Shown here one piece after another: positions 40,188 to 59,009 of a DNA stretch of 64,000 bases (within the stretch, counting starts at the first letter, position 1; every line of letters begins with the position of its first letter). Below the pieces are notes generated by a model, which did not search any database, had not been told where the DNA came from, and saw only the letters and a program-made list of their open reading frames with translations. The translations under genes and the position numbers were made by a program. Source of the DNA: Paraphysomonas bandaiensis (Eukaryota > Protista > Chrysophyceae). The DNA lies in NCBI GenBank assembly GCA_965644295.1, contig CBFFRP010000394.1, forward strand, positions 1 to 64,000, written 5' to 3'.

Positions 40188-42366
40188 ATGAGAGTAAGAT
40201 TATAGTTCTATCTACTTGAAGATTTCACTCTTTATAAATATCAGTACCTAGTGGAAACATCACTGTGCAATGTAAGTCATATAGCCTCTATACTCTGTAC
40301 CACAACAACCAACAACGCCACGGTTTGATTTCATGTTGGGGGGTCTAAGTGGCGACCCAAGCCGAAATCAATGAAGGACAACTCCGAGAAACTATGTCAT
40401 TAAACGGCCTGTAGAACTACACTACGAACTTCGAAAGTTTATTAGGAACCAAAACACCATTTTACCTCCTGCGCAATGAAAAATGTACCTTGTATATAAC
40501 TAACCGTCAGAGCTGCTTCAACGATGGAATCTCTAGTGGTTCCAGCAGAAGGAGGTGCTTCATGTTAATTCATCCTCTGGGATATTCCATTCAGGCGATC
40601 GAAGCCACTGAAAAAGCTCTTTATAGTGGAGTTGGTGACAAAGTTAATGAATTTCTTGCTTAGTTCGATCAGTTCACATATTACTGTACTTCGAAAGCAC
40701 TTGATCTCAAGGTGCTTCAAAAGCGTATGAAATATGACGGACTGACACAGATAGAGTAGATTCGCGGAAATGAAGTCCTAAAGTCGGGTCTGGTACTCAC
40801 TTTTTGCATGTGGATGATATCGGTACCGTCGTCTGTAGAATCGACTGCAAGATGAGTGGGCCACCCGTAGCAAATACAATGTATTCACAGTCGTGGATCG
40901 GCGTGACACAGCACCTCCAGCCCAATATACATCTGTAAAAATAATATGTAAGTCGAGGCTTTTCCTAATTTACTGGGGACCCCCTTACTGACAGTGCCCC
41001 TCTGACATATATATATTGTAACAGGTGAGTCATTAAAATGTACATGTAGCCAGGGTTGACTAGCAGCATATGAAAGCGATATATATATATCTGGCCTTTC
41101 AGCAAAGCGTTTTTGTAGAGTTAATGACAACGCGAGTAAATTTATTTCTTGTTAAATTCGATCAGTTCATATTAATTTGTACTCCTTCTCTGAATCTGAT
41201 CTCCAGTTTCTGCATGATTTCTTTTGTTTTATCAGCTCATAGTTCTCGTGATCCAGAGTATTACATAATATTGGTCACTATCTTCAAAATGCTTCAGGTA
41301 CCATCCTTTTGAACTAATTCGTAGATCGCACTATATATATATACTATAAAAGTAGTCTCTATACTCTACATATATACTGGCTTTCGGCAGCAGCAGTGGT
41401 ATTTTAGCGGGAGGGAATAAAGACTTGGACTCTAGCCCTAGCTCAAGCCCTAAATAGTGTCTTCTCCTTCCTCATCAACCACGTCTTCATACGCTTGGTC
41501 GAACTGGCTACTCCAAACTGATGGAATACAAGCACACTCCCTTAGTGTCATCTTTGCTGGAACTACTATACTCGCTACCACGTCAGATTTTGACATTGCT
41601 TAGACTTTTTACCAACTGACTCAACTCAATATTACTGAATTAGCAGATTATAACAAATTATAATACTTTAACCGTGTTGTTTATACTCATCACATAAAGT
41701 CGGGGTAATCTACCAAAACCTGGTGAAATTTTTGATGATGGACGGAAAAGGGTTCAACTCTGCACAATCAGTAAATATGAAGATAAGAACATATTAAAAA
41801 AATTATTTATAATATCCTTTACTACTTTCTTACACATATATTATATTATACAGTTTAAGCAATTCCATCATAAGCATAGAGCTATCCTTTGTATATGACA
41901 CCCCACTACTACGTCGACGTTTTACGATCAAAACTTTGTCAGATGTGAGAGCGCGCCTTGGTCCATTCATTCTGTTGTAGGCTCTGTCACTGTCCCCCAT
42001 TGCTGTTGCTTTTATAGTCATTTTCTTTGACGAAGTTACTATATACATAATACATTATATATAAAACAAACACTACCACACTTAATATTATTCGGTGCGG
42101 TGAACTGCAAGTAGTACCGGCTACATTTGAATCTGAATGGCTACTTCTATTTGCAGCGCAATTCTCTACAGTATCACTTCACACTTCACTAAAACTTTGT
42201 AGCACTGTATTTAACTGTTGTATTCAATATATATTTTAAGTACAAGTGGAGAAGCTGATGTCGCGATAATAGGTAGCCTTCTGTCAATTAATTATATAAT
42301 ATACAATGTCACAAATACATGATAATGAAGTTGTCACATTTCCTCTAAATGTCATGCGCAGCGTTC

Positions 42367-45300
42367 TCACGATAGCTTCTCAAGTATTTCATGACATAAC
42401 TGTCTACATACGGCATCATCGACAGAGGCTCTAGAATATAAATCTGCGATGTTCACCCGAATAACAGATATTCCTAATACATCTTTGAAAAACTCATCCC
42501 TTCTCCTAGAAAAATTAACACTCGACGGAAACCGATGCATAGGGCCATCAACTTCAATATTATATACAGATTTGCATTTTCCATTTTCTGAAGTACGCCG
42601 AAGCAACATGTCACATTCGAAGCCCTCCATATATATGCCTTCATCCATATTATAGCACACTTGATTTTCAGCAAGAATATGCCGCAGAATAACGGCAAAC
42701 CTTGTCTCCAACTTGGACGGCACAGGTGTTGGCGGAAAAAGCGGTGAATTGGACATATTTCTGAATGATTCCATTCGAATTGCATCAATATCATCCAACA
42801 GTTCTAAAGAGAACTCATAACTTTTTCCATAAAACTGTAGCAGGTTCATTGTGGCAACGAAAGTATTTAGAGGGGTTATATCATCCCCCTTAAAACCACT
42901 AGCCACGTTTGCACCAACACATCTAATGATATGGTGTATAGCACTTTCAACAGCAGCCCTGTGGACTAACCAGCTCTTGTCTGAGCAAAGAGATACTAAT
43001 CCAAATAAAGACATTGCAGCCGATAACGGGGAAAACGTGTCACACTTCATCGCCAGGCCACACAACTTTAGTGCAACTTCCCGTACAGGAGGTGCTCTCA
43101 TATCCATTCTCTGCATCCCGTACAATGCCTTCGCCACATCAGCAGAATCCAGCGAGGGTACATGCATTTTCATTTTCGTGGACAGTGCCTGAACAATCTC
43201 ACATACACTTTCTTCATCACTTGTCATTCCTTGTAGCCCATACAGTGATAATGATATATCTAAAAAATTAAATTGACCATGACAACCCGAAACTTTAGAA
43301 GCTAGGCTGCATAGCATCTTCTTGACAGCTGGACAGTCAGATGACTTATTCCGTAAACCATACAGCGCATTAACAACGGCTTCTGAAGAAAAAATATATG
43401 AGGAACGATCCAAATTATCTGCCAGAAAATTAAATATGTCCCTCACGTTCTCGTCTCCAGACCACATCAACTGGAGACCACTTATCGATCTACTAGTATA
43501 TGGTGGTACGAGCAGTTCATCACATGAGAGTACTTTCGGTTTGAGTGCCGCAGTAAGTTTTATAACTTCCAATGAAGAGTTGTTCATCTGTTTGAGACCA
43601 TGCAAAGCTCTTGCCACATCTATTGCTCGGAATTTTCCTTCGCATTGACGGACGGGTTCAATTAAGGCAGATACAAGAGCACGGATAGGAACCGCGTTGG
43701 AATCCATACTCTGCATTCCATAAATGGCAGCAGCCACCTCGTTTGCTTTCCATCCTTCAGGCGAAATTTTGTTACTGAGAGCAATGACCAGTGCGCACAC
43801 TTCTTTGTGACGACTATCCATGAATTTCAGCCCAAACAGTCCATGGCTGATTCTAGATCCAGTAAGAGGATCCGTACACATTTCTACTTTCCGTTGCAAT
43901 ATTCTTAAAAGTTCCTTCACATGATTAACTTCACTGCGCATATTGCGTAATCCACCCAACATAAGACCAATCTCATCGCCACTCAGCGTACCTTTAAACA
44001 AACGGACTTTTTTTAGTAGTGACCACATAAACCACATTACTTCATTGTCAGATGTCATCATGCGCTTCATAGAATTTACAGCAGTCGCGAGAGTGTCGGA
44101 CGTAAAAGGTTCCTGACAATTATCGATAGCGTCAGTCATATGAATCAACACTTTTCGGAAGTCGGGCGAATTGCTATAGATTTCACACAACCCTTTAAGG
44201 GTTTTCCCCAAGTCGGGCTCAGTGAACCTGCCCTTACATTTCGCCAAACCAACCCGAACAATTGGTAGAATCATTTTCATTTCCTCGTCATTGGGGTGCA
44301 TATTCTGCATACCACAAAAAATATTTGAAACTATAACTGGTATCCATGGCTCTTTGGATTTCCCAACTTGAGAAGTTATATAATTAACCACTTTGCGGAA
44401 AGAAGTCGCGCGGTGCGAATAATTTTTCAGCAGGTAGAAACACTTCGACGCTTCAAAGAGTGGAATGTCTTGCGCTGTATCCAAGTTGGCAAAAATTGCA
44501 GACGCAAACTTTTGTACTGAAGGGTGGTGAAGTTGCATATTCTCAAGTCCCTGGAGGACGAGAAGAAGGTACTGAGGGGACAAGCGTTCTTGAACAGACA
44601 CGGTACGAGAAAGGGCGTTGAGCAACTTTACAACTTCAATATTAGAGGAAGTCATTCTTCGCATACCAGAAACTAACTGAGCTATTTGAGAAGGTGGCAG
44701 TGCAGATGAGCGGGCAATCACTGAAGTCAATGCAGCTAGCAGCATTTGAATCTCCTTGTGATCGGTTGACATGTGCATCAAGTTTGCCATGTCGGTGAAT
44801 ATGTCACTTGATGACAAATCTGACTGTACTAATGATCGGTTGCATAATGCAGCAATTAAGTTTCGTACATCAGAGTGTTCACTGGAAAATTCTTTCATAC
44901 CACAGAGTACCCTTACCAACTGGGACGCACTCATCGACCCAGATGCGGTATTCACATGGACTGACAAGGTTCGAAGTACCTCCTGGGTTGGGGGAGACCC
45001 AATGCTTCGTCCACGAAGAGAGTTGATGAGCTCGCATAACGTTTCTGTTTGTACCGTATTACACGATTGAAGGTGTCGACCAAGGGAAAGCACCACCTCA
45101 TCCATCTCTTTGTGACTGCTAGGCATGTTCTTCAGTTCCCTCAAACATAAGACGATGTCCTCAGGTGAGAGAGCTGGACGGTGAGGAAGGCATATATGGC
45201 GATTGAGTGCGCGTTCCAGTAATCTTACTTCACTGGTATACGACGTCCACTGAGAACATATCCGGAAACCAACCGATAAACACTCCGCCGACAGTGGCTC

Positions 45301-45957
45301 TTCACATAAGTCAACCCGATCAGTGACAGCCTTTAAAAGTATAACAGATTCTTTGTGCATGAGGTTCTTATGTGAGAGAGCTCTCAAGCAGTCTTCAATC
45401 ATCACTGAGGTATACGAACCACAACTTGAAGTCATCAATGGAGCGACAATCTTCATTAACGACCGCACAGGTCTTGTTTCACTGCCAACGTGGTGGAATC
45501 CACGCAAGATATGAGATACCATATCCGCTGGGATGCTATCGAAACGCTGATGAGTGAGCTGCAGAACAAGAGAATGGAGAAGTCGGTCCACAGCCTGTGC
45601 ATGTATATGAGCATGCATGGGAGGATATAGGGGTGTTATGTCCCTTGTAATGTCCTTTATGTCCCCCATTATTGTGCACAGCATTTTTGGACTAATAGTT
45701 CTAACAGAGTGTGTGATATGATCACGTAATTCATTAATACCACTTGCATTGACCCTCCCTTGATCATCTCTCAATGAAAACTTACTGGAGAATGACTCAC
45801 TTGAGTTACTGCACTGTGCAATTTGCTGATATATATAAAAAGGGACATCTTTTTTATAGAGACGTGAAATTGCACGATTATGTGTAATAAGATGGTGAGT
45901 AAGGGCTTTAGAAGGGCAGTTGAGTGTTCGGGATAGGTGATGAAGTGTACGAAGCAT
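42367..45957 (-). CDS. Alpha-helical ~40-aa repeat protein with C-terminal RAP domain, probably organelle-targeted
   Basis: About 20 repeats (e.g. FRAIDVARALHGLKQMNNSSLEVIKLTAALKPKVLSCDEL). RAP motif CDMLL..YNIEVDGPMH..RRRDEF..GISVIRV. Basic, acid-free N-terminus MLRTLHHLSRTL.. from the ATG at 45957. Confidence 0.85.
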   Translation of the reverse strand: MLRTLHHLSRTLNCPSKALTHHLITHNRAISRLYKKDVPFYIYQQIAQCSNSSESFSSKFSLRDDQGRVNASGINELRDHITHSVRTISPKMLCTIMGDIKDITRDITPLYPPMHAHIHAQAVDRLLHSLVLQLTHQRFDSIPADMVSHILRGFHHVGSETRPVRSLMKIVAPLMTSSCGSYTSVMIEDCLRALSHKNLMHKESVILLKAVTDRVDLCEEPLSAECLSVGFRICSQWTSYTSEVRLLERALNRHICLPHRPALSPEDIVLCLRELKNMPSSHKEMDEVVLSLGRHLQSCNTVQTETLCELINSLRGRSIGSPPTQEVLRTLSVHVNTASGSMSASQLVRVLCGMKEFSSEHSDVRNLIAALCNRSLVQSDLSSSDIFTDMANLMHMSTDHKEIQMLLAALTSVIARSSALPPSQIAQLVSGMRRMTSSNIEVVKLLNALSRTVSVQERLSPQYLLLVLQGLENMQLHHPSVQKFASAIFANLDTAQDIPLFEASKCFYLLKNYSHRATSFRKVVNYITSQVGKSKEPWIPVIVSNIFCGMQNMHPNDEEMKMILPIVRVGLAKCKGRFTEPDLGKTLKGLCEIYSNSPDFRKVLIHMTDAIDNCQEPFTSDTLATAVNSMKRMMTSDNEVMWFMWSLLKKVRLFKGTLSGDEIGLMLGGLRNMRSEVNHVKELLRILQRKVEMCTDPLTGSRISHGLFGLKFMDSRHKEVCALVIALSNKISPEGWKANEVAAAIYGMQSMDSNAVPIRALVSALIEPVRQCEGKFRAIDVARALHGLKQMNNSSLEVIKLTAALKPKVLSCDELLVPPYTSRSISGLQLMWSGDENVRDIFNFLADNLDRSSYIFSSEAVVNALYGLRNKSSDCPAVKKMLCSLASKVSGCHGQFNFLDISLSLYGLQGMTSDEESVCEIVQALSTKMKMHVPSLDSADVAKALYGMQRMDMRAPPVREVALKLCGLAMKCDTFSPLSAAMSLFGLVSLCSDKSWLVHRAAVESAIHHIIRCVGANVASGFKGDDITPLNTFVATMNLLQFYGKSYEFSLELLDDIDAIRMESFRNMSNSPLFPPTPVPSKLETRFAVILRHILAENQVCYNMDEGIYMEGFECDMLLRRTSENGKCKSVYNIEVDGPMHRFPSSVNFSRRRDEFFKDVLGISVIRVNIADLYSRASVDDAVCRQLCHEILEKLS

Positions 45958-46088
45958 TATGATGCATAATGGAGGAGGAATGTATGTGGTGTTTGTTAAT
46001 GTGGACTGGTTGCACTGAACCATTCATACATATACACACACATCGAGACACTGCCCACGGAATACCTTATACACCACGTATATGTACA

Positions 46089-46487
46089 CATACATACATA
46101 CATACATACATACATACATACATACATACATACATACATACATACATACATACATACATACATACATACATACATACATACATACATACATACATACATA
46201 CATACATACATACATACATACATACATACATACATACATACATACATACATACATACATACATACATACATACATACATACATACATACATACATACATA
46301 CATACATACATACATACATACATACATACATACATACATACATACATACATACATACATACATACATACATACATACATACATACATACATACATACATA
46401 CATACATACATACATACATACATACATACATACATACATACATACATACATACATACATACATACATACATACATACATACATACAT
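46089..46487. repeat. (CATA)n microsatellite, ~400 bp
   Basis: Seen directly; between the divergent RAP-repeat and NTPase starts. Confidence 0.99.
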
Positions 46488-46692
46488 GCCTTTCTACCTG
46501 GACCTACCTACCTTTACATTACATCCAATCATTATCTATCTTTAGTATTTTATTCGTCCCTTACCTAACTACATACGCGTACATTATGCAGGTATGACAT
46601 CATACAAAGACACTCATATATATATCCCCCATACATACACACACATATATCAACACTATCAATCTCATATATCTATACTTACAAACACTAAC

Positions 46693-47595
46693 ATGAAAGT
46701 ACTCCTTACAGCACCACCACAAACTGGTAAAAGTACTCTATTAAAAAAGATATTAGATCAATATCACGGATATAAACGTGGTATATTCTCACGTGAAAAT
46801 CGTAAAGATAATAAACGGATTGGGTTTACAGCCGTATTATCTAATGGAAAAACACGTGATTTTATGATAAAAGAGAATAAAAATATACAAAAATTCAATA
46901 ATTTTCCTAAAGTTGGGAAATATTATGTTGATATTGATTGTATTAATAATTTTATATTACCAGAAATTTATTCTTGTCTTGAAGAATCTCATGATTGTTT
47001 GATATATATTGATGAAATAGGTCGAGCTCAATCATTTTCAACATGTTATATGTCTGCTGTAGAGCAGTTATATAGATCTGATAGACATGTTATTGGTACT
47101 ATTGTTTACGCTGATGAACCTTTTAGTATGGTGTTCAAGAGATCGCCCGACGTGTGGTTAATTGAGGTCACAATCGACAATAGAGACTACCTTCCAGATA
47201 TAATACTAGGGCTGTTTGAAAATGCAGTACTGTTGGAAAGCCTTGCACCGGACATTCAAGCCAGAATTCGAACAAAATTTTTTGAGCTTTTATCGGGAGG
47301 AGAGTTTGTTGCAGCAAAGAAGTTGTTTACTAACACGGTACGCTACTTAGCTGAAAATCGAGTACAGCGAATAGGTGAAGCAGATTATCCTGCTTCTGAC
47401 GAGGTATCGTATCCAAAGACAGATCGATATCGTGTTATAGGTGACACAAACACTCATTGTGTGGTGCGCGATGAGGTATCACAAAGCTACTACTGCGATT
47501 GCCCATTGTTCAAAGGAGAGGGGAAGTTCAAGGGTCAAAACCAAACTTGCTCACATATATTAAGCGTTTTATTTTTTCAGTCAGTGGGAAAATGA
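46693..47595 (+). CDS. NTPase_1 (THEP1/NTPCR-like) fused to a C-terminal SWIM Zn finger
   Basis: VLLTAPPQTGKST, RIGF, KVGKYYVD, IYIDEIG, VIGTI, IEVTIDNRD; C-terminal YYCDC..TCSHIL; intronless. Confidence 0.85.
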   Translation: MKVLLTAPPQTGKSTLLKKILDQYHGYKRGIFSRENRKDNKRIGFTAVLSNGKTRDFMIKENKNIQKFNNFPKVGKYYVDIDCINNFILPEIYSCLEESHDCLIYIDEIGRAQSFSTCYMSAVEQLYRSDRHVIGTIVYADEPFSMVFKRSPDVWLIEVTIDNRDYLPDIILGLFENAVLLESLAPDIQARIRTKFFELLSGGEFVAAKKLFTNTVRYLAENRVQRIGEADYPASDEVSYPKTDRYRVIGDTNTHCVVRDEVSQSYYCDCPLFKGEGKFKGQNQTCSHILSVLFFQSVGK

Positions 47596-48197: not shown

Positions 48198-51100
48198 TGG
48201 TAGCAGACGGTAGTTCCGCAAGTAGTTCGGAATGGAAACACCTTCCGAAGTTCGATCAGTTCGGTGTTGTGAACTGGACGAAGCGATTGAGAGTTTGGCT
48301 TATGAGAAAGAATCGGAACCATCTTGGGTTGGAAGAGCGACCGCATCGACCTGCTGACAATGCGTCCACAGCTGTGAAAAACAAGTATAAGGAAGACCTC
48401 GACAAGTGGTTGGAGAGGAAAGACACCTGCATCAGTTCCATCTTCGAAGCTGTTCAACCTGTGGCGGAGGCGCTTGAGATTGTTGATCAATACTTCCGAG
48501 AGAAGGACATGCTTCCACCTGATGATCCCGATAAGGAGATGTTAGCAAGTGAATTGGTAAATAAATTGGTTATTAGATTTCGTGGGGAAACCCAGTACGA
48601 ATTGGTGGAACTGAATAAACAGTTTGCGTCATTTAGAATTCTACAGGGGGAGCTGGTGTGTACAGCCATTGATCGACTGAACGGAATTGTCCAAAAAATG
48701 ACGGAACTTGGTGAGCCGCCAACTGACGTATCCAAAAAAACGAAGCTGCAGACTGCGCTGGAAACGAGGAAGGATCTGGAGCAGCTGTACACAAACATCT
48801 ACCTGAAAGGTGATATTTCATTTAATGAGATGATCACCATTTGTAGGCGCTTCGACCAGGCAAAGGGTCTACCACAGGAGTCTTCTGCACCGGAAGTACA
48901 TTGGAATTCTTCTGATCAAGAGGTAACATGCTCATACTCTAAATGTGGAAAACGAGGTCACACGCAGAAGAACTGCTGGATGAAGAAGAAAGATCTGAAG
49001 ATCTCCCAAATGAAGCGCAATGGTAAAAACAAGCATCGAAGAGAGCAATCAGAATCCAAAAGAAGTAAGTCAAAAAATGGCGCTGATGATGATGGATGCT
49101 TTGTGTGTGGCGTATCTGGACATCGAGCTCATGAATGCAGACATCGAGCTCAAGTTCGAAAAACAAGGAAAGCGGAGGATTCTGTTAACAAAAAACGACA
49201 TTTTTCCGAAAAAAACGGTACGATGGAAAGGCCCATCAAAAAGAGCTCGGACTGGAATCGTTATCTTCAAAGAGACGAGCAAGAGGATGATTCTGTGCAC
49301 ATGTTGTTATATGATGAATCGAGTAACTTAGAAGTGAATGTTGCAGATGAGGTGCTGCATACTTCTGAAGACATTGTATTTCTAGACAGCTGCGCGTCGA
49401 AACAACTCTTCATCATCAAGAACAGTGATATTCTACAGACATTTGTTGCAGACGAAGGAGCCATTCAGACAACCAAAGCGGGATCCAGCTTACGATATAC
49501 TGGCTCAGGCAACTATGGTGACTGGACAAAATTAAAGGTATGCCCCGACTCAGTCAAGAATATTTGTTCGGGAGGGATGCTTCGTACGCTTGGATATGGA
49601 CTTCAGCTGCTAGAGACCCCAAAAATAGTGCGATTGGATAATGCAGAAGTTGTTCTTGAAGCTAGGTATTCAGATAATGGAATGCCCTTCGTTGATCTAA
49701 AGGACTTGTTGGAGTTACCTGACTTGACGAGTTTAGCTGCAGAAGTACATCTATCGGATAAAACAAATGAAGACCCTCTGGAATTGCTTCACAAACGATG
49801 CGGGCATGTCAGCAAGCGCAAGCTATTAGAAGCTTTCAAACATCGGTTGTTCACAGGGAGTGGCCTTAACAGATCTCATCTGAGTAAGAAGAGTCTTCAG
49901 AAAACCAAGGGTATCTGCAAAGCCTGTGCAAAGTCGAAGATTACCAGAATCTCGTTTCCTGGGAAGAGTGATGAAGAGCTACAGGCGACAAGGTTTCTGG
50001 AAAAAGTAACTGTCGATATAGGAGTATATTTCAATTGTCCATCTCGACAGGGATACCGGTATGTATTAGCGTTGACAGATGTGGCCACCAAGGAATGCTG
50101 GGAGTTTCCGTTGAAAACTCGGACCGCAAGTGAGGTGTTGGAGCACATTAGGAATTGGGTCGAGGTTCTTCTTCCCAAGTATCCAGGAGTTCATCGACTA
50201 TCTGTGTATCATGCCGATGGGGGAGCCGAACTCATTGATAAGTCTATTCAGGAGTATCTTCACAGCAAGTTTGGCACCTCAATTACGTGGAGCTCTACGG
50301 ACTCACCTGAGATGAATGGCGTGTCTGAGAGACGTTTTCGAACCGCGGGAGAGATGACTCTTGCAATGCTGTCAGATGCTGGATTCCCAGTTCCATTCTG
50401 GTGGGATGCCTACGTATATGCATCTGAAATTATTCGCATGATGCCCACTCGGACCTACCGCGGATGGATGTCTCCCATGGAGTGTGTACCTGGAGGTTCT
50501 GTTCCGGATTTATCCAGTTTACGTCGATGGGGGTGTAAAGCTTATGTGAAGACTCCCAGGGGTGATCGTCGAAAAAATTGGCAAGACAAATCGCATATTG
50601 GATATTTCTTAGGTCTCTCCAAAAAGAAGAGGGGATACAGAATATGGCTAGGAGAGTCCGAAGTTGTGTCAATACATGTGTTATTCGACGAGAGCATTCC
50701 CCCCAGAGAGAAGGAGTACTTCGAGGAGCTGGAGGCTGCGTTAGTTAAACATGATCCCCAGGCTCGACAGGTTGAAGAGTTCAACCATTTGATTGGATCT
50801 TACCATACCGATGAGGGTTTCCTGTTTAGGACTACGAGAGTCGTGGTTCGGAAAGGTTTGATCGTGGCTTATAGAGCCTTAGTAACTGCTGGTAGAGAGC
50901 AGTTGGAGGAGAAGACTCCGATACATATAGCTGATGTAGTGAAACTAACTCAGTCGTATAATTTGCGCAGGTGGCACGAAAATCCTGCGACCCGTGACGA
51001 TGGGGCAGGTGGTGAGGAGCGATCGATGCCGGCTGGGGGTGGGACACCCAAACAGTCTACGGCAGATGACTCATCAGGGAGTGAGCAGACTCCATGTGCC

Positions 51101-54485: not shown

Positions 54486-57400
54486 TTATGTCCGAGGAGG
54501 GGGCGGTGGTGGACGTGACCTTCTGGTAGGTGTGCTAGCTCCACTACTCTGAGTACTACTCGGCGGAGGGCTCCGAGGGATTGGTGGTGGAACAGACGAA
54601 GCTAACCTAACCTGAGATATGCTCACGCTGGCCCGACGGGAAGCTAGAGGGGCTTTAGACGCCCCACGCAGGGTGCCCCGGTTGTCAGACACGTTTTTGC
54701 TAACAAGGTCACGATAAGGAATATCATCTCCAGATATATTGACTGGGGGGTTTGCTTTCGAATCTTGACTACACATTTGCATGGTGTATGCATTTACCGT
54801 GAATCTTCGCTTATTAGGAACGGCGGTCGCACTTGCTTCTCCACGAATATCCTCATGTTGAGATGTTGACGCTAGATACGACTTACCAGTATATTGGCTA
54901 TGATCCACTGGATTGTCAGTTGGGATATTAACGTACGATTGATCAGATGGCTTGGGAGAAGGTGTTCTGCTCAGTTGTAAAGATGACAACTCTTCTGCCT
55001 GTGATGAAGGTATAGCGGATTGCTCTGTAAGTGGTAAGCTTCTGCTTACTGGAGATGATAAGCAACCTACACTGGTGTTGTTATAAGACTTCGCGTAAAT
55101 GTGTTGCTCTTTTTCATGCGATTTAGCTCCAATCGCTAAACTATCCATATCTTTCGCGTACAATGAATTTAGACTCATTAAATCTGGGGCTCTGAACAAC
55201 TGGTCAACCCCATGTTCGGAAATGCTATTCTCCACATGATAAGAGCTGCTAGGGTCAACACGCTCTTTCGTTGAGGTATTAAGTAGAGACAGAGATGAGT
55301 CACCCCTGCGACCACGATCCATCACGGCAACGCTGCTCCTGCGTACAGATACCCCAGAAGCTGAAGCGCTGATCCGAACTTCAGATGGCTTGAAGCGATT
55401 ATTACCAGCGTTCAATGACATCGCCCAGGACGTTGAGTCGTGGTCTACGGCATGACTCTGGCCAGCATTGGGCCGCGCATTGAAACTCGTGGTGCTTCGG
55501 CGCTTCATCGAATTGGCTGAGTGCTTCACACTTGATTGTGCAGGGGACATGAAATTCAAAGATTTCTCGAGAGGTGGTGACTCAGTACTGCTATCGGTAT
55601 CTTCACTCAATGTGGGCATCAACTTTATACCTGGACTCGAGTGCATAGCTCTGTTATATAGATTGGACATCTGTGACTGGGAACCATATACACGGTTATT
55701 AGACGAATCTACATCATTCTCACTTCGATTCATTTGGTCAGATGCGGCATAACTATCATGGGTCGTTTCAACAACGTCACCTACATCTGTTTTCTCCGCG
55801 TAGGTTGGGAATATCGTTTTCCTTACACCATCTACACTAGGATCCGTTTGGACCGCACCAGTTACCTCATTGCGGCTCCCATTGAGGAATTTATTCACAT
55901 CTATGTCACTCGTCATATTATGGTGACCGATAAAGGCTTCATCTACATCAATTCTGTCATCACCAACATCGTTTATATCGTGGTCATAGTGAATGCCGCC
56001 ATCAATATTATCCACAGCTGCTGCACCATTCACTTCATCAGCAACATCGTTTATATCACGGTCATAGTGAATGCCGCCATCAATATTATCCACAGCAGCC
56101 GTTTCTTCAACATCATCAGCAACATCGTTTATATCGTGGTCATAGTGAATGCCGCCATCAATATTATCCACAGCAGCCGTTTCTTCAACATCAGCAGCAA
56201 AAGCGTTTATATCACGGCTATAGTAAATAGCGCTACCAGCTCTATCCACAGCAGGGGCGTCATCGACTTCAACAGCAGCTTCATTTATATCGCGAGTGGT
56301 TTCGTCATGGTCATTTCCACAACTATTATTGACGGGCTCGTCCATAATAGCTACATCAGTAAATTTCGTGTCATTGTATACACCTCTGATAGATATCTCA
56401 GACAGTTGAGGTACACTCTTCGAATGATTCATTGCTGACAAACTGCTTCTTCTAGTAGAATTGTTTACCCCAACTTCAATATCTCGGTTGCGAAGGCTGT
56501 ATATATCCGCTTCTGATAGGCTGCTTCGTCTAGTAGACTCATTTATATCGCGAGTGGTTTCGTCATGGTCATTTCCACAACTATCATTGATGGGCTCGTC
56601 CATAATAGCTACATCAGTAAATTTCGTGTCATCGTATACACCTCTGATAGATATCTCAGATAGTTGAGGTACACTCTTCGAATGATTCATTGCTGACAAA
56701 CTGCTTCTTCTAGTAGAATTGTTTACCCCAATTTCAATATCTCGGTTGCGAAGACTGTATATGTTCGCTTCTGATAGGCTGCTTCGTCTAGTAGACTTCC
56801 CCTCCGCCGGGCTGCAAATATAACTTAAAATATAGGGAGATAAATAGCATACGTACATTAATTTTCCCATTGTAGAATGACTCTGTTTATCAGAAAGGGC
56901 GCTTTCATCCATTTTTCTTCTCTTATCATCTGCATTCCACGTTGAAATAGGTCGATCTGACACCGCAGCACCGGAGGATGTGCTTGTACTGCTACACTTC
57001 TTATCCTTCATAATTGCATCACATGTTTCATGCTTATCATCAACTGTGGCTACAGTATTAGGAGTACCTATGATATCAGTTTGGCCATCGTGAATTACAC
57101 GATAGGGAGCATCAGCTTCAGTCTCATGAATCTCGTTTCGGCACATATACGGGTCGATAGGATCAGAGGTAACTTGTTGGTCTAAGTCACTTGTATATCT
57201 ATAGTCACTGTCGGATTTGTCTACATATGTACTGTCACTCGTACATGATTCCCACATTCGATTCAGTACACCATTGGAGACTTGACCAACAGCACCATGA
57301 TGCAATACCTCAGTGCAACTAAACTTATCTTTATTATTCTCCTCATTCAGTGAGGCAGCCTCAGCCCGATCAATAAATTCAAATTCGGTAATAGTGCAAG

Positions 57401-58559
57401 CATCAACCCCTCTGGAGGAGTTGGGGTAAATCGGTATATCAGCCGTGTCTGTACTCACGTCTGCTGTGTTGACAAACTGATTTATAAAAGATATATTTCT
57501 AAATTGTTCTTCACCACTAAGCTGTTGTAGCTCCTCTTGTTGATATGAAGTATGACCCTTTGGAGATTGGCTTATACCTGCGGGGTCCGGATGCCTCTCT
57601 GTGTCACTTCTAGGGATTTCAATGGCCTGCAGATCACACCTTGTATCAAACAGATTTGCATCATTAACCTCTGACGAACGTTTCGAAGGACTACAGTGTG
57701 CACACTGATTAGACTTGGTCGATTTAACTGGACTGCTCTGAACCTGATAGAGCCATGATGAGAGGTATGTTTCATTATCATCAGCTCTCTTTTCACCACT
57801 TCCAACACTGCTCGTATTCTCGGCATGGTTTCCAGCGATTTGTCCTTCGTCCACCTGTACAGCACGATTTGCCACAAAGCTTGAGGCGCGGGTAAGGTTT
57901 GGAGATTGAGTTAACGGACTCATCGCTTGCGTTGTAGGTGCCAACGACTGACGGTTCTTTTGACATAATTCTTCCAAAGTTTCCATGAGCGAAGAAGACA
58001 TATGTTTCTCATGCCATGCGCTACTAGATCCACCATTCGACTGACTCCTATACGAACTATCATCGTCTTTAGAATCCTGATATGATATATCACTGGGTGA
58101 TGCAGCACTTAGCCCAGTAGCACGATCTACAGTCCTTCTATACCCACTAGACACTAATCTCCACTTATAGAACGCCCGTAATTTCCAGGAATCATATTTC
58201 CTTCTCATCATACTATAAACAATCCAACAACATGAAGCAGTAGATGTCTCTTTATGTCCTTTACTATCAATCCCCTTCATAGTCCCTTTAATAGTTCCTT
58301 CATTTCGTTTAATAATTTTTGTATGAAATGAACGATTATATCTCATGCCTGATAATCTAAGCATCTTATCTCTACCCGTCCCACTAATACCTCTCAGTAA
58401 TCCTGATAACTCATGATATATATGACCTAAAAACTTATCTATTGTAATCGAATTTCTATGATTAAATATAGAATCATATGAATGAATTAATTCCTCAAGT
58501 GTGTTTAGTGTGAGGTATATACTAGTCTCTAGACGACCTACAGCAGATTCAAGATTCAT
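54486..58559 (-). CDS. Large, mostly disordered Ser/Asp-rich protein with internal repeats and a Pro-rich tail
   Basis: 1357-codon ORF, possibly reading through a short intron near 56812-56856; ends RPPPPPPRT. Confidence 0.75.
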   Translation of the reverse strand: MNLESAVGRLETSIYLTLNTLEELIHSYDSIFNHRNSITIDKFLGHIYHELSGLLRGISGTGRDKMLRLSGMRYNRSFHTKIIKRNEGTIKGTMKGIDSKGHKETSTASCCWIVYSMMRRKYDSWKLRAFYKWRLVSSGYRRTVDRATGLSAASPSDISYQDSKDDDSSYRSQSNGGSSSAWHEKHMSSSLMETLEELCQKNRQSLAPTTQAMSPLTQSPNLTRASSFVANRAVQVDEGQIAGNHAENTSSVGSGEKRADDNETYLSSWLYQVQSSPVKSTKSNQCAHCSPSKRSSEVNDANLFDTRCDLQAIEIPRSDTERHPDPAGISQSPKGHTSYQQEELQQLSGEEQFRNISFINQFVNTADVSTDTADIPIYPNSSRGVDACTITEFEFIDRAEAASLNEENNKDKFSCTEVLHHGAVGQVSNGVLNRMWESCTSDSTYVDKSDSDYRYTSDLDQQVTSDPIDPYMCRNEIHETEADAPYRVIHDGQTDIIGTPNTVATVDDKHETCDAIMKDKKCSSTSTSSGAAVSDRPISTWNADDKRRKMDESALSDKQSHSTMGKLMYVCYLSPYILSYICSPAEGKSTRRSSLSEANIYSLRNRDIEIGVNNSTRRSSLSAMNHSKSVPQLSEISIRGVYDDTKFTDVAIMDEPINDSCGNDHDETTRDINESTRRSSLSEADIYSLRNRDIEVGVNNSTRRSSLSAMNHSKSVPQLSEISIRGVYNDTKFTDVAIMDEPVNNSCGNDHDETTRDINEAAVEVDDAPAVDRAGSAIYYSRDINAFAADVEETAAVDNIDGGIHYDHDINDVADDVEETAAVDNIDGGIHYDRDINDVADEVNGAAAVDNIDGGIHYDHDINDVGDDRIDVDEAFIGHHNMTSDIDVNKFLNGSRNEVTGAVQTDPSVDGVRKTIFPTYAEKTDVGDVVETTHDSYAASDQMNRSENDVDSSNNRVYGSQSQMSNLYNRAMHSSPGIKLMPTLSEDTDSSTESPPLEKSLNFMSPAQSSVKHSANSMKRRSTTSFNARPNAGQSHAVDHDSTSWAMSLNAGNNRFKPSEVRISASASGVSVRRSSVAVMDRGRRGDSSLSLLNTSTKERVDPSSSYHVENSISEHGVDQLFRAPDLMSLNSLYAKDMDSLAIGAKSHEKEQHIYAKSYNNTSVGCLSSPVSRSLPLTEQSAIPSSQAEELSSLQLSRTPSPKPSDQSYVNIPTDNPVDHSQYTGKSYLASTSQHEDIRGEASATAVPNKRRFTVNAYTMQMCSQDSKANPPVNISGDDIPYRDLVSKNVSDNRGTLRGASKAPLASRRASVSISQVRLASSVPPPIPRSPPPSSTQSSGASTPTRRSRPPPPPPRT
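55960..56798 (-). repeat. Coding repeats: 78 bp x ~4 and 258 bp x 2
   Basis: DINDVADDVEETAAVDNIDGGIHYDH-type units (55960-56290); 86-aa duplication (56281-56538 and 56539-56798). Confidence 0.9.
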
Positions 58560-59009
58560 AATATGAATATAGATGAAGATAAAGATGAAGTTGAAGTGAT
58601 ATTTCTATGAAGTCGAAGTGATATATTGAGATAATTGAGTAGATGGACCAATGCATAGATAGATACAGCCAGCTGTGGAGGCAGGTGTATGTATGCTCTG
58701 TACGTATGCCGGCAGTACAGCAGCATTATACGTCGTATAATACGCCCACAAGAGCTTTCGACATTATATACTACTGATAAAATTGGAGGTTTATGAAAAA
58801 GTCACAATTATTCTGAATATTTCACTTATTTATAGTGGAGACAAAAGACAAAACGACAAAAGACTTTTTTTTTTAGCAAAATTGTTTTTTTGTCGGGTGC
58901 AAATGGAGCTGAAGTTATTTAGGAACCTTATCACAATTTCTCATCACAAGCCATCACCCATCAGCCCTGTGACCTGCTGAATAATTAATTGACCTTAACT
59001 ATCACATAT

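Follow-up and report, generated by a model that had tools for sequence, protein, structure and literature searches.

Of the organellar RNA-binding solenoids, those of the OPR, HPR and FASTK types are, to our knowledge, understood least well, with poorly defined motifs and no accepted recognition code. The OPR repeat of green algae has been defined as a pair of antiparallel helices of 38–40 residues (PMC8635915, PMC6212722); arranged in tandem, such pairs form the solenoids of organelle-targeted proteins (e.g., OPR-RAP/NCL and the mitoribosomal mL113 and mL115–118), which often carry RAP at the C-terminus and have undergone lineage-specific expansions. The OPR motif is missing from Pfam (PMC13126933), and its PPPEW signature is lacking in about one quarter of the Chlamydomonas OPR motifs (PMC12691811). 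The HPR proteins of Apicomplexa and other myzozoans are built of mitochondrial helix-pair repeats without PPPEW, frequently followed by RAP; their unit is 37 residues long and weakly conserved, and their mitochondrion harbors highly fragmented rRNA.

In the human FASTK proteins (e.g., FASTKD4, 9gek, and the nuclease FASTKD5), a mitochondrial presequence and a helical region precede a FAST1–FAST2–RAP module with a Vsr-like cavity. The RAP domain itself displays a Vsr-like fold, and FASTKD4, harboring Asn where Vsr has His69, was judged inactive (PMC11879112). Trypanosome RESC4, RESC6 (deposited as a ‘RAP domain-containing protein’) and RESC8 also possess mitochondrial helical repeats, albeit irregular ones, and belong to the guide-RNA editing machinery. 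We know of no such machinery outside kinetoplastids. Bacterial endonucleases of the Vsr, DUF559 and MTES_1575 families share the core fold and the D…ExDGxxH…RD…R motif with the protein described below, but these are small DNA enzymes, stand-alone or helicase-fused, with neither a helical-repeat array nor organelle targeting.

The gene analyzed here resides on the minus strand, as do all its features, of a 64,000-nucleotide stretch of the Paraphysomonas bandaiensis genome (hereafter, the window). A single open frame at window positions 42367–46023 encodes 1218 amino acids, counted from the first ATG (46023). The gene is expressed and lacks introns. A discrete transcript-like contig of 3.7 kb, present in two runs of the organism (X1 and X2), is colinear with the genome over 42276–45982, running without a joint and differing at a single base; the runs are taken for RNA by guess only, and the contig ends cannot define the start or the end of the transcript. 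In a poly(A) marine metatranscriptome, four contigs match the gene with at least 99% identity, and contig X4 covers 42332–42790. Since the first in-frame ATG lies outside the contigs ending at 45982, translation likely starts from M23 (MLRTLHH…; ATG 45957–45955), which coincides with the gene end given in the original prediction. The resulting intron-free coding sequence (42367..45957, stop codon 42369–42367) specifies 1196 amino acids; the 22 in-frame codons upstream (45958..46023) are probably untranslated, and the 91 nt at 42276..42366, delimited by the ends of the 3.7-kb contigs, probably represent the 3′ untranslated region.

Most of the protein is occupied by an array of about 22 helix–loop–helix repeats of 38–41, mostly 40, residues (residues 164/165–1036; 42916..45531), delineated by autocorrelation, HMM search and AlphaFold modeling. 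The autocorrelation of residues 150–1000 (BLOSUM62, z relative to shuffles) peaked at lags of 40 (z = 10.1), 80 (z = 8.6) and 120 (z = 7.0). Within residues 164–1036, the repeat HMM recognized 20 units, leaving two gaps of 79–80 residues with one degenerate unit in each, hence the total of about 22. The units are spaced by 38–41 residues, with exactly 40 in 9 of the 17 single-unit spacings, and are composed, in the AlphaFold model, of helix A (9–10 residues), a loop of about 9 residues, helix B (15–16 residues) and a loop of about 6 residues. Thus, the roughly 20 tandem repeats initially proposed, many of exactly 40 residues, were borne out, and the consensus drawn at that time proved essentially right relative to the family one, L-[ST]-x-Q-x-I-G-N-A-L-Y-G-L-Q-x-M-S-S-x-H-x-E-V-R-x-L-L-x-A-L-x-x-K-I-x-x-[SC]-x-x-x, the family logo being built from 1,306 exact-40 repeats.

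The register is kept throughout the family: exactly 40 residues separate the units in 177/285 spacings of the paralogs from the same genome (37 residues in 7/285) and in 1077/1762 spacings of the external relatives (37 in 3/1762). The repeats of the present gene are more degenerate than the family consensus and the repeats of its paralogs. With a pI of 8.5 and a net charge of +10, the array is only mildly basic, and the median pI of the family is about 7. As a side observation, helix-A positions 2/5 and 4/8 covary (mutual information, MI, of 0.44 bits vs. a null maximum of 0.21), a hint only toward a candidate base-recognition code.

Compared with OPR, the repeats share the tandem 38–40-residue helix pairs and the solenoid geometry, but their period of 40 is strict, their consensus is much sharper, and the host is a stramenopile-type protist instead of a green alga. 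The PPPEW motif is absent from the logo of the 1,306 exact-40 repeats, whose loop reads M-S-S-x-H-x-E-V (M-S-S-x-H, passing into helix B with E-V-R-x-L-L-x-A-L-x-x-K-I). The modal spacing of 40 and the strong conservation depart likewise from the 37-residue, weakly conserved HPR unit. The Pfam PPR models gave no hit on this protein, on nine paralogs or on 42 relatives, and the period of 40 is not the 35 of PPR, although true PPR genes are present at about ten loci elsewhere in the genome. None of the FAST_1, FAST_2 and RESC models of Pfam matched at E ≤ 1, be it in this protein, in its paralogs or in the 42 relatives; a further FAST_1 search gave no match either, but neither did its controls. 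As the OPR motif is not in Pfam, a blank from this database is to be expected for such repeats.

The gene belongs, as a divergent member, to a large, lineage-expanded and unannotated sub-family represented in marine and other metagenomes. Counting the paralogs and relatives, as had been suggested at the outset, gave 106 matches at about 30 loci of the genome (at least 30 paralog loci) and 3,623 external clusters (50% identity) in public metagenome data at E ≤ 1e-3, 862 of them at ≤ 1e-30. At least nine paralog loci, with open frames of 819–1435 aa, encode the same C-terminal domain. All external members checked come from metagenomes and are unnamed or ‘hypothetical’; no domain is listed for the 18 that have Pfam records, two members from JGI are annotated as ‘very-short-patch-repair endonuclease’, and one member sits on a eukaryote-like contig of 272 kb.

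The fold of the array was modeled with AlphaFold for residues 560–957 (pLDDT 94.9, pTM 0.92). In VIA-align, the closest neighbor was the chain 7pkt_Q of the Chlamydomonas mitoribosome LSU (Z 16.4, 375 of 398 residues), followed by RESC6 (Z 15.2), Polytomella mitoribosome 8a22_Xd (Z 14.5), ASA2 (Z 12.5), the T. gondii mitoribosome (Z 11.9) and 7pkq_P (Z 10.3), with generic ARM/importin (ARM/HEAT-type) proteins appearing after a gap (Z ≤ 7.7); Z-scores are inherently non-specific for helical repeats. Chain 7pkt_Q and similar chains are presumed to be OPR-type from PMC8660880, at the level of the protein class and not of the individual chain; in that study, the Chlamydomonas ‘ASA2-like/OPR’ proteins accommodate single-stranded rRNA along the inner groove. 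Foldseek was concordant, with RESC6 (E 9e-6), RESC8 and RESC4 as the top matches and designed PPR–RNA complexes among the others. Still, ASA2, one of these close neighbors, has a structural role in ATP synthase, and RNA binding does not necessarily follow from the fold.

Searches by other means arrived in the same neighborhood. The repeat profile yielded weak hits in PDB sequences, the natural ones being mitochondrial (mL104, E 0.005; RESC4, 0.01; RESC6, 0.09), and the language-model features of both the whole protein and the repeats alone were nearest to RAP/RESC6/FAST_1 clusters (0.93–0.96). The family HMM aligned, weakly, in the helix-A register to the OPR repeat printed in PMC12691811: the family Q-x-I-G-N-A-L-Y-G-L resembles Q-x-V-S-N-x-x-W-S-L of that repeat, the common pattern being Q-x-[IV]-[GS]-N-x-x-[YW]-[GS]-L.

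The array is followed by a non-repeat helical linker (residues 1037–1100; 42724..42915), which packs on the C-terminal domain and is the equivalent of the helices in the FAST1/FAST2 module. The domain itself (residues 1101–1218; 42370..42723), recognized from AlphaFold, alignments and conservation, is of the Vsr/DUF559/RAP-like PD-(D/E)xK kind and has the secondary structure alpha-beta-beta-beta-alpha-beta-alpha (core alpha-beta-beta-beta-alpha-beta); the model of residues 958–1218 has a pLDDT of 92.9. Over its full length, this module matched the LSU chains of the T. gondii mitoribosome (Z 12.7 and 11.4), a structure containing RAP and HPR proteins and matched by the array as well, FAST1–FAST2–RAP of FASTKD4 (9gek; Z 11.2, rmsd 4.6, 222 residues over model residues 1–261), ASA2 (Z 10.7) and Tetrahymena mL104 (Z 9.5). 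The matches to Vsr (1cw0, Z 9.6), I-Bth0305I (3r3p, Z 9.9) and the DUF559 protein NGO0050 (3hrl, Z 8.5) were limited to the core (about 95–103 residues aligned, 18–20% identity). The best full-length hit of the ESM-Atlas shape search belonged to a cluster with RAP at 90%, RESC6 at 81% and FAST_1 at 73% (TM 0.62, 222 residues).

The conserved residues of the domain are E1106, D1138, E1157-x-D1159-G-x-x-H1163, R1175-D1176 and R1189; among the 42 relatives, D1138, E1157, D1176 and R1189 never vary, and D1159, G1160, H1163 and R1175 are kept in at least 39. The full Vsr/DUF559-type set D…ExDGxxH…RD…R is intact in the present protein, including the Asp…His pair lost in FASTKD4, and the domain may cut the bound RNA. 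By sequence, the domain is nearer to the bacterial DNA-endonuclease families MTES_1575 and DUF559, found below the Pfam gathering thresholds in 13/42 and 10/42 relatives, respectively, than to Pfam RAP. The latter model gave no match at E ≤ 1–10, whether in this protein, in its isolated C-terminus, in the C-termini of 14 paralogs or in the 42 relatives; a six-frame RAP search of the whole genome, a first look that yielded no candidates, also returned no match and is not proof of absence. Profile searches of the module in PDB sequences brought nothing significant. The RAP assignment made in the original prediction therefore holds for the FAST2/RAP-like, Vsr-type PD-(D/E)xK fold (FASTKD4 Z 11.2, Vsr Z 9.6), but not for the Pfam RAP model.

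The presequence-like N-terminus proposed earlier (ORF residues 23–60; 45844..45957) finds support in composition: it is basic and Ser/Thr/His-rich, with seven R/K and one D/E (at position 37, the first acidic residue) among the first 40 residues from M23, and shows no signal-peptide-like hydrophobic core. Basic, acid-poor N-termini are also encountered in 18 of 20 paralog ORFs (the exceptions are L046 and L057). The protein is probably mitochondrial, the targeting being judged from composition. As the plastid of Paraphysomonas has been reported to be devoid of a genome (PMC11528492), the only organellar target left would be the mitochondrion. One contig of the genome assembly is mitochondrial and carries cox1 and an SSU rRNA in one intact piece.

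Collectively, the gene is best viewed, with a probability of about 0.68, as encoding a mitochondrion-targeted alpha-solenoid of the OPR/HPR/FASTK-RAP superfamily, a nucleus-encoded factor bearing a Vsr-type domain. The mitochondrial location, a ligand that is RNA rather than DNA or protein, and the nuclease activity are what we infer here, and so is the organellar RNA-processing role put forward originally, with which the nearest neighbors in sequence, features and structure, almost all of them mitochondrial and RNA-binding or RNA-associated, are in keeping. In such a protein, running from the presequence through the superhelix of about 22 helix-pair repeats and the helical linker to the RAP-like domain, the groove would most likely hold a stretch of single-stranded mitochondrial RNA. 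Like members of the OPR, PPR and FASTK families, the protein would probably recognize a single mitochondrial transcript or a few specific ones and control how their ends are formed, how stable they are or how they are translated; the RAP-like domain, to judge from its residues, may itself cut the bound RNA. A bolder extension, which we consider doubtful, regards the sub-family as programmable mitochondrial RNA/nucleic-acid cutters, i.e., modular readers with one repeat per nucleotide fused to a catalytically intact Vsr-type endonuclease; their specificity would reside at the covarying helix-A positions (2/5, beside the conserved Q4/N8), and the code would be distinct from those of PPR and PUF.

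A repeat class independent of OPR, HPR and FAST, with a base code of its own and a solenoid plus nuclease fold reached by convergence, would account for the strict 40-residue period, the missing PPPEW, the silence of the Pfam FAST_1, RAP and PPR models, the helix-A covariation (MI 0.44 vs. 0.21 at most in the null) and a consensus far sharper than the published OPR and HPR logos; a 2025 review also describes repeats outside 34–38 residues as ‘apparently missing’ (PMC12691811). This explanation is improbable, as the primary literature already gives OPR a span of 38–40 residues (PMC8635915, PMC6212722), the OPR repeat printed in PMC12691811 has the helix-A motif and register in common, and the complete order of presequence, solenoid, linker and Vsr-like domain is that of OPR-RAP, HPR-RAP and FASTK proteins, so that the independent emergence of both modules in the same order would be unparsimonious. 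Moreover, the best structural matches of both parts belong to OPR/HPR/FASTK-type families, well above generic repeats, and the feature and shape searches reach RAP/RESC6/FAST_1 clusters. Whether the repeats are just ordinary OPR, HPR or FAST motifs, a finding that would undercut the original prediction of a new class, gets a divided answer: Pfam FAST_1 and PPR do not match, yet the structure is nearest to the presumed OPR-type chain 7pkt_Q and to RESC6. In our reading, the proteins form a distinct branch within the known OPR/HPR/FASTK-RAP group that binds RNA in organelles and do not make up a wholly new class; the 40-residue register, the lack of PPPEW and the invisibility to the RAP and FAST_1 models set it apart as separate and unannotated.

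The nearest solved neighbors are largely subunits of complexes (Toxoplasma, Chlamydomonas, Polytomella and Tetrahymena mitoribosomes, ASA2, RESC), suggestive of a structural or scaffold component of a mitoribosome, ATP synthase or assembly factor, its solenoid making protein–protein or non-specific rRNA contacts, with no sequence-specific RNA recognition and an inert nuclease fold. The inactive Vsr-like site reported for FASTKD4 (PMC11879112), the near-neutral pI of the family and the degenerate repeats of this gene, as expected of an old gene with a fixed function, conform to this possibility. Nevertheless, stable complexes are over-represented among solved structures, many such subunits still bind RNA in the groove (PMC8660880), the mitochondrial SSU rRNA is one intact piece with no fragments to hold together, the 30 or more paralogs with varying repeat numbers look target-diversified rather than stoichiometric, and the catalytic-type residues show little or no variation across the relatives, rendering a scaffold unlikely. 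Even less probable is a repeat-guided endonuclease acting on mitochondrial or nuclear DNA in repair, recombination or homing-like cleavage, in spite of the proximity of the domain sequence to MTES_1575 and DUF559, the core matches to Vsr and the homing endonuclease I-Bth0305I, the retention of all DUF559-type catalytic residues and the very-short-patch-repair label of some metagenome members. Similarity of this kind is expected for RAP, itself Vsr-like (PMC11879112); the full-length module, not only the core, matches FASTKD4 and mitoribosomal RAP-type proteins, and wherever the ligand of a helix-pair solenoid of this geometry has been solved, it is single-stranded RNA (PMC8660880; designed PPR–RNA complexes).

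Taken by itself, the window yields a modest result, a single divergent member of the family. At the level of the sub-family, much of the organellar gene-expression toolkit of heterotrophic marine stramenopiles appears to escape current annotation, the members checked being unnamed, ‘hypothetical’ or mislabeled as a DNA-repair endonuclease. With its 3,623 clusters, 40-residue modules far more regular than the published OPR or HPR repeats and an apparently intact Vsr-type active site, as opposed to the inactive one of FASTKD4, the best-studied human member, the sub-family could be a tractable system for learning how the superfamily reads RNA and whether RAP-type domains cut it. If the modular-reader interpretation were true, the regular 40-residue modules would be well suited to engineering.

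The gene studied is a single long open reading frame (ORF) on the minus strand (42367-46023, 1218 aa; residues are numbered from its first ATG). Contigs of X1 and X2, two small runs of the organism, cover 42276-45982 colinearly with 0 joints and one base difference, and four contigs from the poly(A) marine metatranscriptome X4 match the gene at ≥99% identity; hence, it is taken as expressed and intron-free. Both X1 and X2 are presumed, by guess, to be RNA, and their contig ends cannot prove transcript ends; judged from these ends, the 3' UTR is taken as ~91 nt long. The downstream intergenic stretch is uncovered in the X1/X2 contigs and continuous in X11, a DNA-like run. Because the contigs stop at 45982, short of the first in-frame ATG (46023), translation probably starts at Met23, i.e., at the ATG at 45957 (MLRTLHHLSRTL...), which matches the end coordinate of the original prediction. 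Should the transcript start near 45982, as the contigs indicate, another ATG at 45967, out of frame and 10 nt before this probable start, would open a 19-codon uORF (45910-45967, minus strand) that overlaps the start of the main ORF. The single A>G change relative to the window at 45533, common to X1, X2 and X11, reflects the strain or the assembly rather than RNA editing, since the DNA-like run also carries it.

Most of the gap between the gene (minus strand, ATG 45957) and the divergent gene at 46594 is occupied by a perfect (ACAT)x100 microsatellite (46088-46487, 400 bp, 100% matches). The divergent ORF (46594-47595, plus strand) encodes a 333-aa P-loop protein of the NTPase_1 type (PF03266, E 3e-28) with a weak SWIM zinc-finger-like motif at its C-terminus (E 0.17). 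A far deeper X1/X2 contig (41500-41814; word depth ~860 vs. ~50 for the studied gene), featuring small length variants at a short repeat near 41711-41753, ends just downstream of the gene and probably represents the 3' end of a neighbour with high expression.

The tandem repeats of ~40 residues and the presequence-like N-terminus, both claimed in the original prediction, are borne out. BLOSUM62 autocorrelation over residues 150-1000 shows maxima at lags 40, 80 and 120 (z = 10.1, 8.6 and 7.0 vs. shuffles), and the repeat HMM finds 20 units in residues 164-1036 at spacings of 38-41; two double-length gaps hold one degenerate unit apiece, bringing the array to ~22 units. From Met23, the N-terminus is basic and hydroxyl-rich in composition, with 36 positions free of acidic residues and no hydrophobic signal-peptide core; N-termini of the same kind were found in 18/20 paralog ORFs. 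Charge analysis gave no strong signal. Repeat-summed Pfam matches (DUF6094, Hemerythrin, Spectrin and others) in the protein, its C-terminus and nine full-length paralogs were spurious (0 stretches), and a weak match to the 37-position Pfam model DUF1601 was rejected as chance.

Counting relatives, as had been suggested, uncovered a large family. When searched against the 62.5-Mb assembly of the organism, the repeat region gave 106 matches at ~30 loci, all in long stop-free ORFs, and the C-terminal 210 residues as a query gave at least nine other loci. In the 20 paralogs fetched for analysis, the repeats are more regular than in the studied gene, reaching up to 28 units, with 177/285 spacings of exactly 40. 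Across the family, the consensus reads L-[ST]-x-Q-x-I-G-N-A-L-Y-G-L-Q-x-M-S-S-x-H-x-E-V-R-x-L-L-x-A-L-x-x-K-I-x-x-[SC]-x-x-x. The studied gene shares 22-27% identity with its relatives, and its helix-A positions are far less conserved than in the paralogs, so it is a divergent member. Two adjacent divergent paralogs on contig C90 (L043:2041-4524, plus strand, 13 repeats; L044:2698-6993, minus strand, 28 repeats) share an identical stretch of ~100 residues inside the C-terminal nuclease-like domain and differ at their extreme C-termini, which suggests either a recent duplication with a change in repeat number or gene conversion.

Outside the genome, the single protein retrieved nothing from a word-index protein search; the family alignments A2 and A3 retrieved only unannotated metagenome proteins and no bridge sequence annotated with Pfam RAP. 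Because of the blank single-protein search, and because the claim of novelty rests on relatives, an exhaustive profile search was run, yielding 3,623 clusters (50% identity) at E≤1e-3, with 862 of them at ≤1e-30. Spacing is exactly 40 in 1077 of 1762 cases among the 161 best external proteins. Those external members that were inspected stem from ENA, JGI, Logan and MGnify assemblies, one of them from a 272-kb eukaryote-like contig; their names are absent, “hypothetical protein” or, in two cases, “very-short-patch-repair endonuclease”, and none of the 18 with Pfam records carries a Pfam domain.

Structure prediction upheld the proposed helical nature of the array. The AlphaFold2 model of residues 560-957 (44-sequence alignment; pLDDT 94.9, pTM 0.92) is a confident helix-pair solenoid of ten units, each of which joins a short helix A to a longer helix B through a 9-residue loop and closes with a 6-residue loop, and its nearest structures are almost all mitochondrial repeat proteins. 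The top natural Foldseek matches are RESC6 (E 9e-6), RESC8 and RESC4 of the trypanosome RNA-editing substrate-binding complex, along with designed PPR-RNA complexes, a T. brucei mt-SSU assembly factor and mitoribosomal proteins of Polytomella, Chlamydomonas and Toxoplasma. VIA-align ranks a Chlamydomonas mitoribosome LSU chain on top (Z 16.4, 375/398 residues), followed by RESC6 (15.2, 14.8), Polytomella Xd (14.5), ASA2 (12.5), T. gondii Xd (11.9), RESC8 (10.4) and a Chlamydomonas SSU chain (10.3), with a subsequent drop to ARM/importin folds (≤7.7). The large helical mitoribosomal proteins of Chlamydomonas have been named “ASA2-like/OPR” and hold single-stranded rRNA in a positively charged inner groove (PMC8660880). 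In PDB sequences, the single protein found no matches and the repeat profile found weak ones, the natural ones being mitochondrial (mL104, E 0.005; RESC4, 0.01; RESC6, 0.09); the designed helical repeat DHR14 at the top of the latter search was put down to convergence between idealised helix pairs rather than to homology. By language-model features, the repeats alone lie nearest to RESC6/FAST_1 clusters (0.93-0.94).

The RAP domain claimed to follow the repeats stands at the level of the fold, but not in Pfam. The Pfam models RAP, FAST_1 and FAST_2 gave 0 matches in the protein, its C-terminus, 14 paralog C-termini and 42 relatives, and a six-frame genome search with RAP and FAST_1 was blank, without prefilter candidates, which is not proof of absence. 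The recurrent Pfam matches among the 42 relatives, all sub-threshold, were MTES_1575 (13), DUF559 (10) and DUF2726 (3), all three being Vsr-like PD-(D/E)xK families. Searches of C-terminal profiles against the PDB returned only matches to CYP51 and designed proteins, judged spurious. The AlphaFold2 model of residues 958-1218 (42-sequence alignment; pLDDT 92.9, pTM 0.89) comprises two repeats, three longer helices and an alpha-beta-beta-beta-alpha-beta-alpha module. At full length, its VIA-align matches include T. gondii mitoribosome LSU chains (Z 12.7 and 11.4), the human FASTKD4 FAST1-FAST2-RAP crystal structure (Z 11.2, 222 residues), Polytomella ASA2 (10.7) and Tetrahymena mL104 (9.5); the T. 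gondii mitoribosome structure includes RAP and HPR proteins (PMC11652630). The top full-length match in the Atlas shape search is a RAP+RESC6+FAST_1 cluster (TM 0.62). Matches of the helical part to glycoside hydrolases and (alpha/alpha)-barrels (Z 7-10) were discarded as partial and generic. For model residues 144-261 taken by themselves, the matches are I-Bth0305I (9.9), Vsr (9.6) and a DUF559 protein (8.5). FASTKD4 has exactly such a Vsr/I-Bth0305I-like cavity, where Asn570 replaces Vsr His69 opposite Asp51, and appears catalytically inactive (PMC11879112). Across the 42 family sequences, D1138, E1157, D1176 and R1189 are invariant, and N1155, D1159, G1160, H1163 and R1175 are kept in at least 39; all nine are intact in the studied protein. 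Based on the structural matches and these conserved residues, the modelled domain resembles RAP in fold and context and DUF559 in motif; plausibly, it is an active nuclease.

The proposal of a new class was not supported: OPR repeats already span 38-40 residues, HPR repeats being 37 by definition (PMC6212722, PMC8635915), and both folds match members of the OPR/HPR/FASTK-RAP group. Domain databases lack an OPR model, and therefore most OPR proteins are unannotated (PMC13126933). The family motif x-Q-x-I-G-N-A-L-Y-G-L-Q-x-M parallels the start of one printed Chlamydomonas OPR repeat, P-Q-D-V-S-N-V-C-W-S-L-A-A-L (PMC12691811); the family HMM aligns with this repeat in the same register with a weak score (4.1 bits; 7/1,000 shuffles as good), which is only suggestive. 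The family differs in lacking PPPEW, in its strict 40-residue register, in a much sharper consensus and in a C-terminal domain unseen by the Pfam RAP model. An independent origin as a new repeat class is unlikely. From these likenesses and differences, the protein is filed as working like, and belonging to, the OPR/HPR/FASTK-RAP superfamily, and its family as a distinct, unnamed sub-family.

As to function, a structural subunit devoid of specific RNA recognition is somewhat less improbable than a new class; ASA2 demonstrates that the fold can be purely structural. A DNA-directed endonuclease is the most doubtful of the three. The strongest covariation links helix-A positions 2/5 and 4/8 (0.44 bits vs. 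a null maximum of 0.21, with repeat kinship not controlled). These pairs have i, i+3/4 spacing on one helical face; Q4 and N8 form a conserved pair, and variability is very high at positions 2 and 5. Such positions may possibly determine specificity, which offers a lead but does not amount to evidence for a code.

The mitochondrial contig C669 (>58 kb) carries cox1 (49607-50944) and a full-length, unfragmented, bacterial-type SSU rRNA (57077-58663, 934 bits); therefore, the family is not needed for assembling fragmented rRNA. Elsewhere in the assembly, the bacterial SSU rRNA model also matches a 1.5-kb stretch (G000:C68:176251-177771) at 469 bits, less than the 565 bits of the presumed nuclear 18S copies and far less than the mitochondrial SSU rRNA; this stretch may be a divergent rDNA copy, an organelle-derived insert or a contaminant. 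The genus Paraphysomonas has been reported to possess a plastid without a genome (PMC11528492), and only ~10 PPR loci were found in the assembly. Given the reported lack of a plastid genome, the intact mitochondrial SSU rRNA and the few PPR loci, the protein would most likely act on mitochondrial transcripts in a sequence-specific manner, in their end formation, stabilisation or translation, rather than stitch rRNA fragments together.
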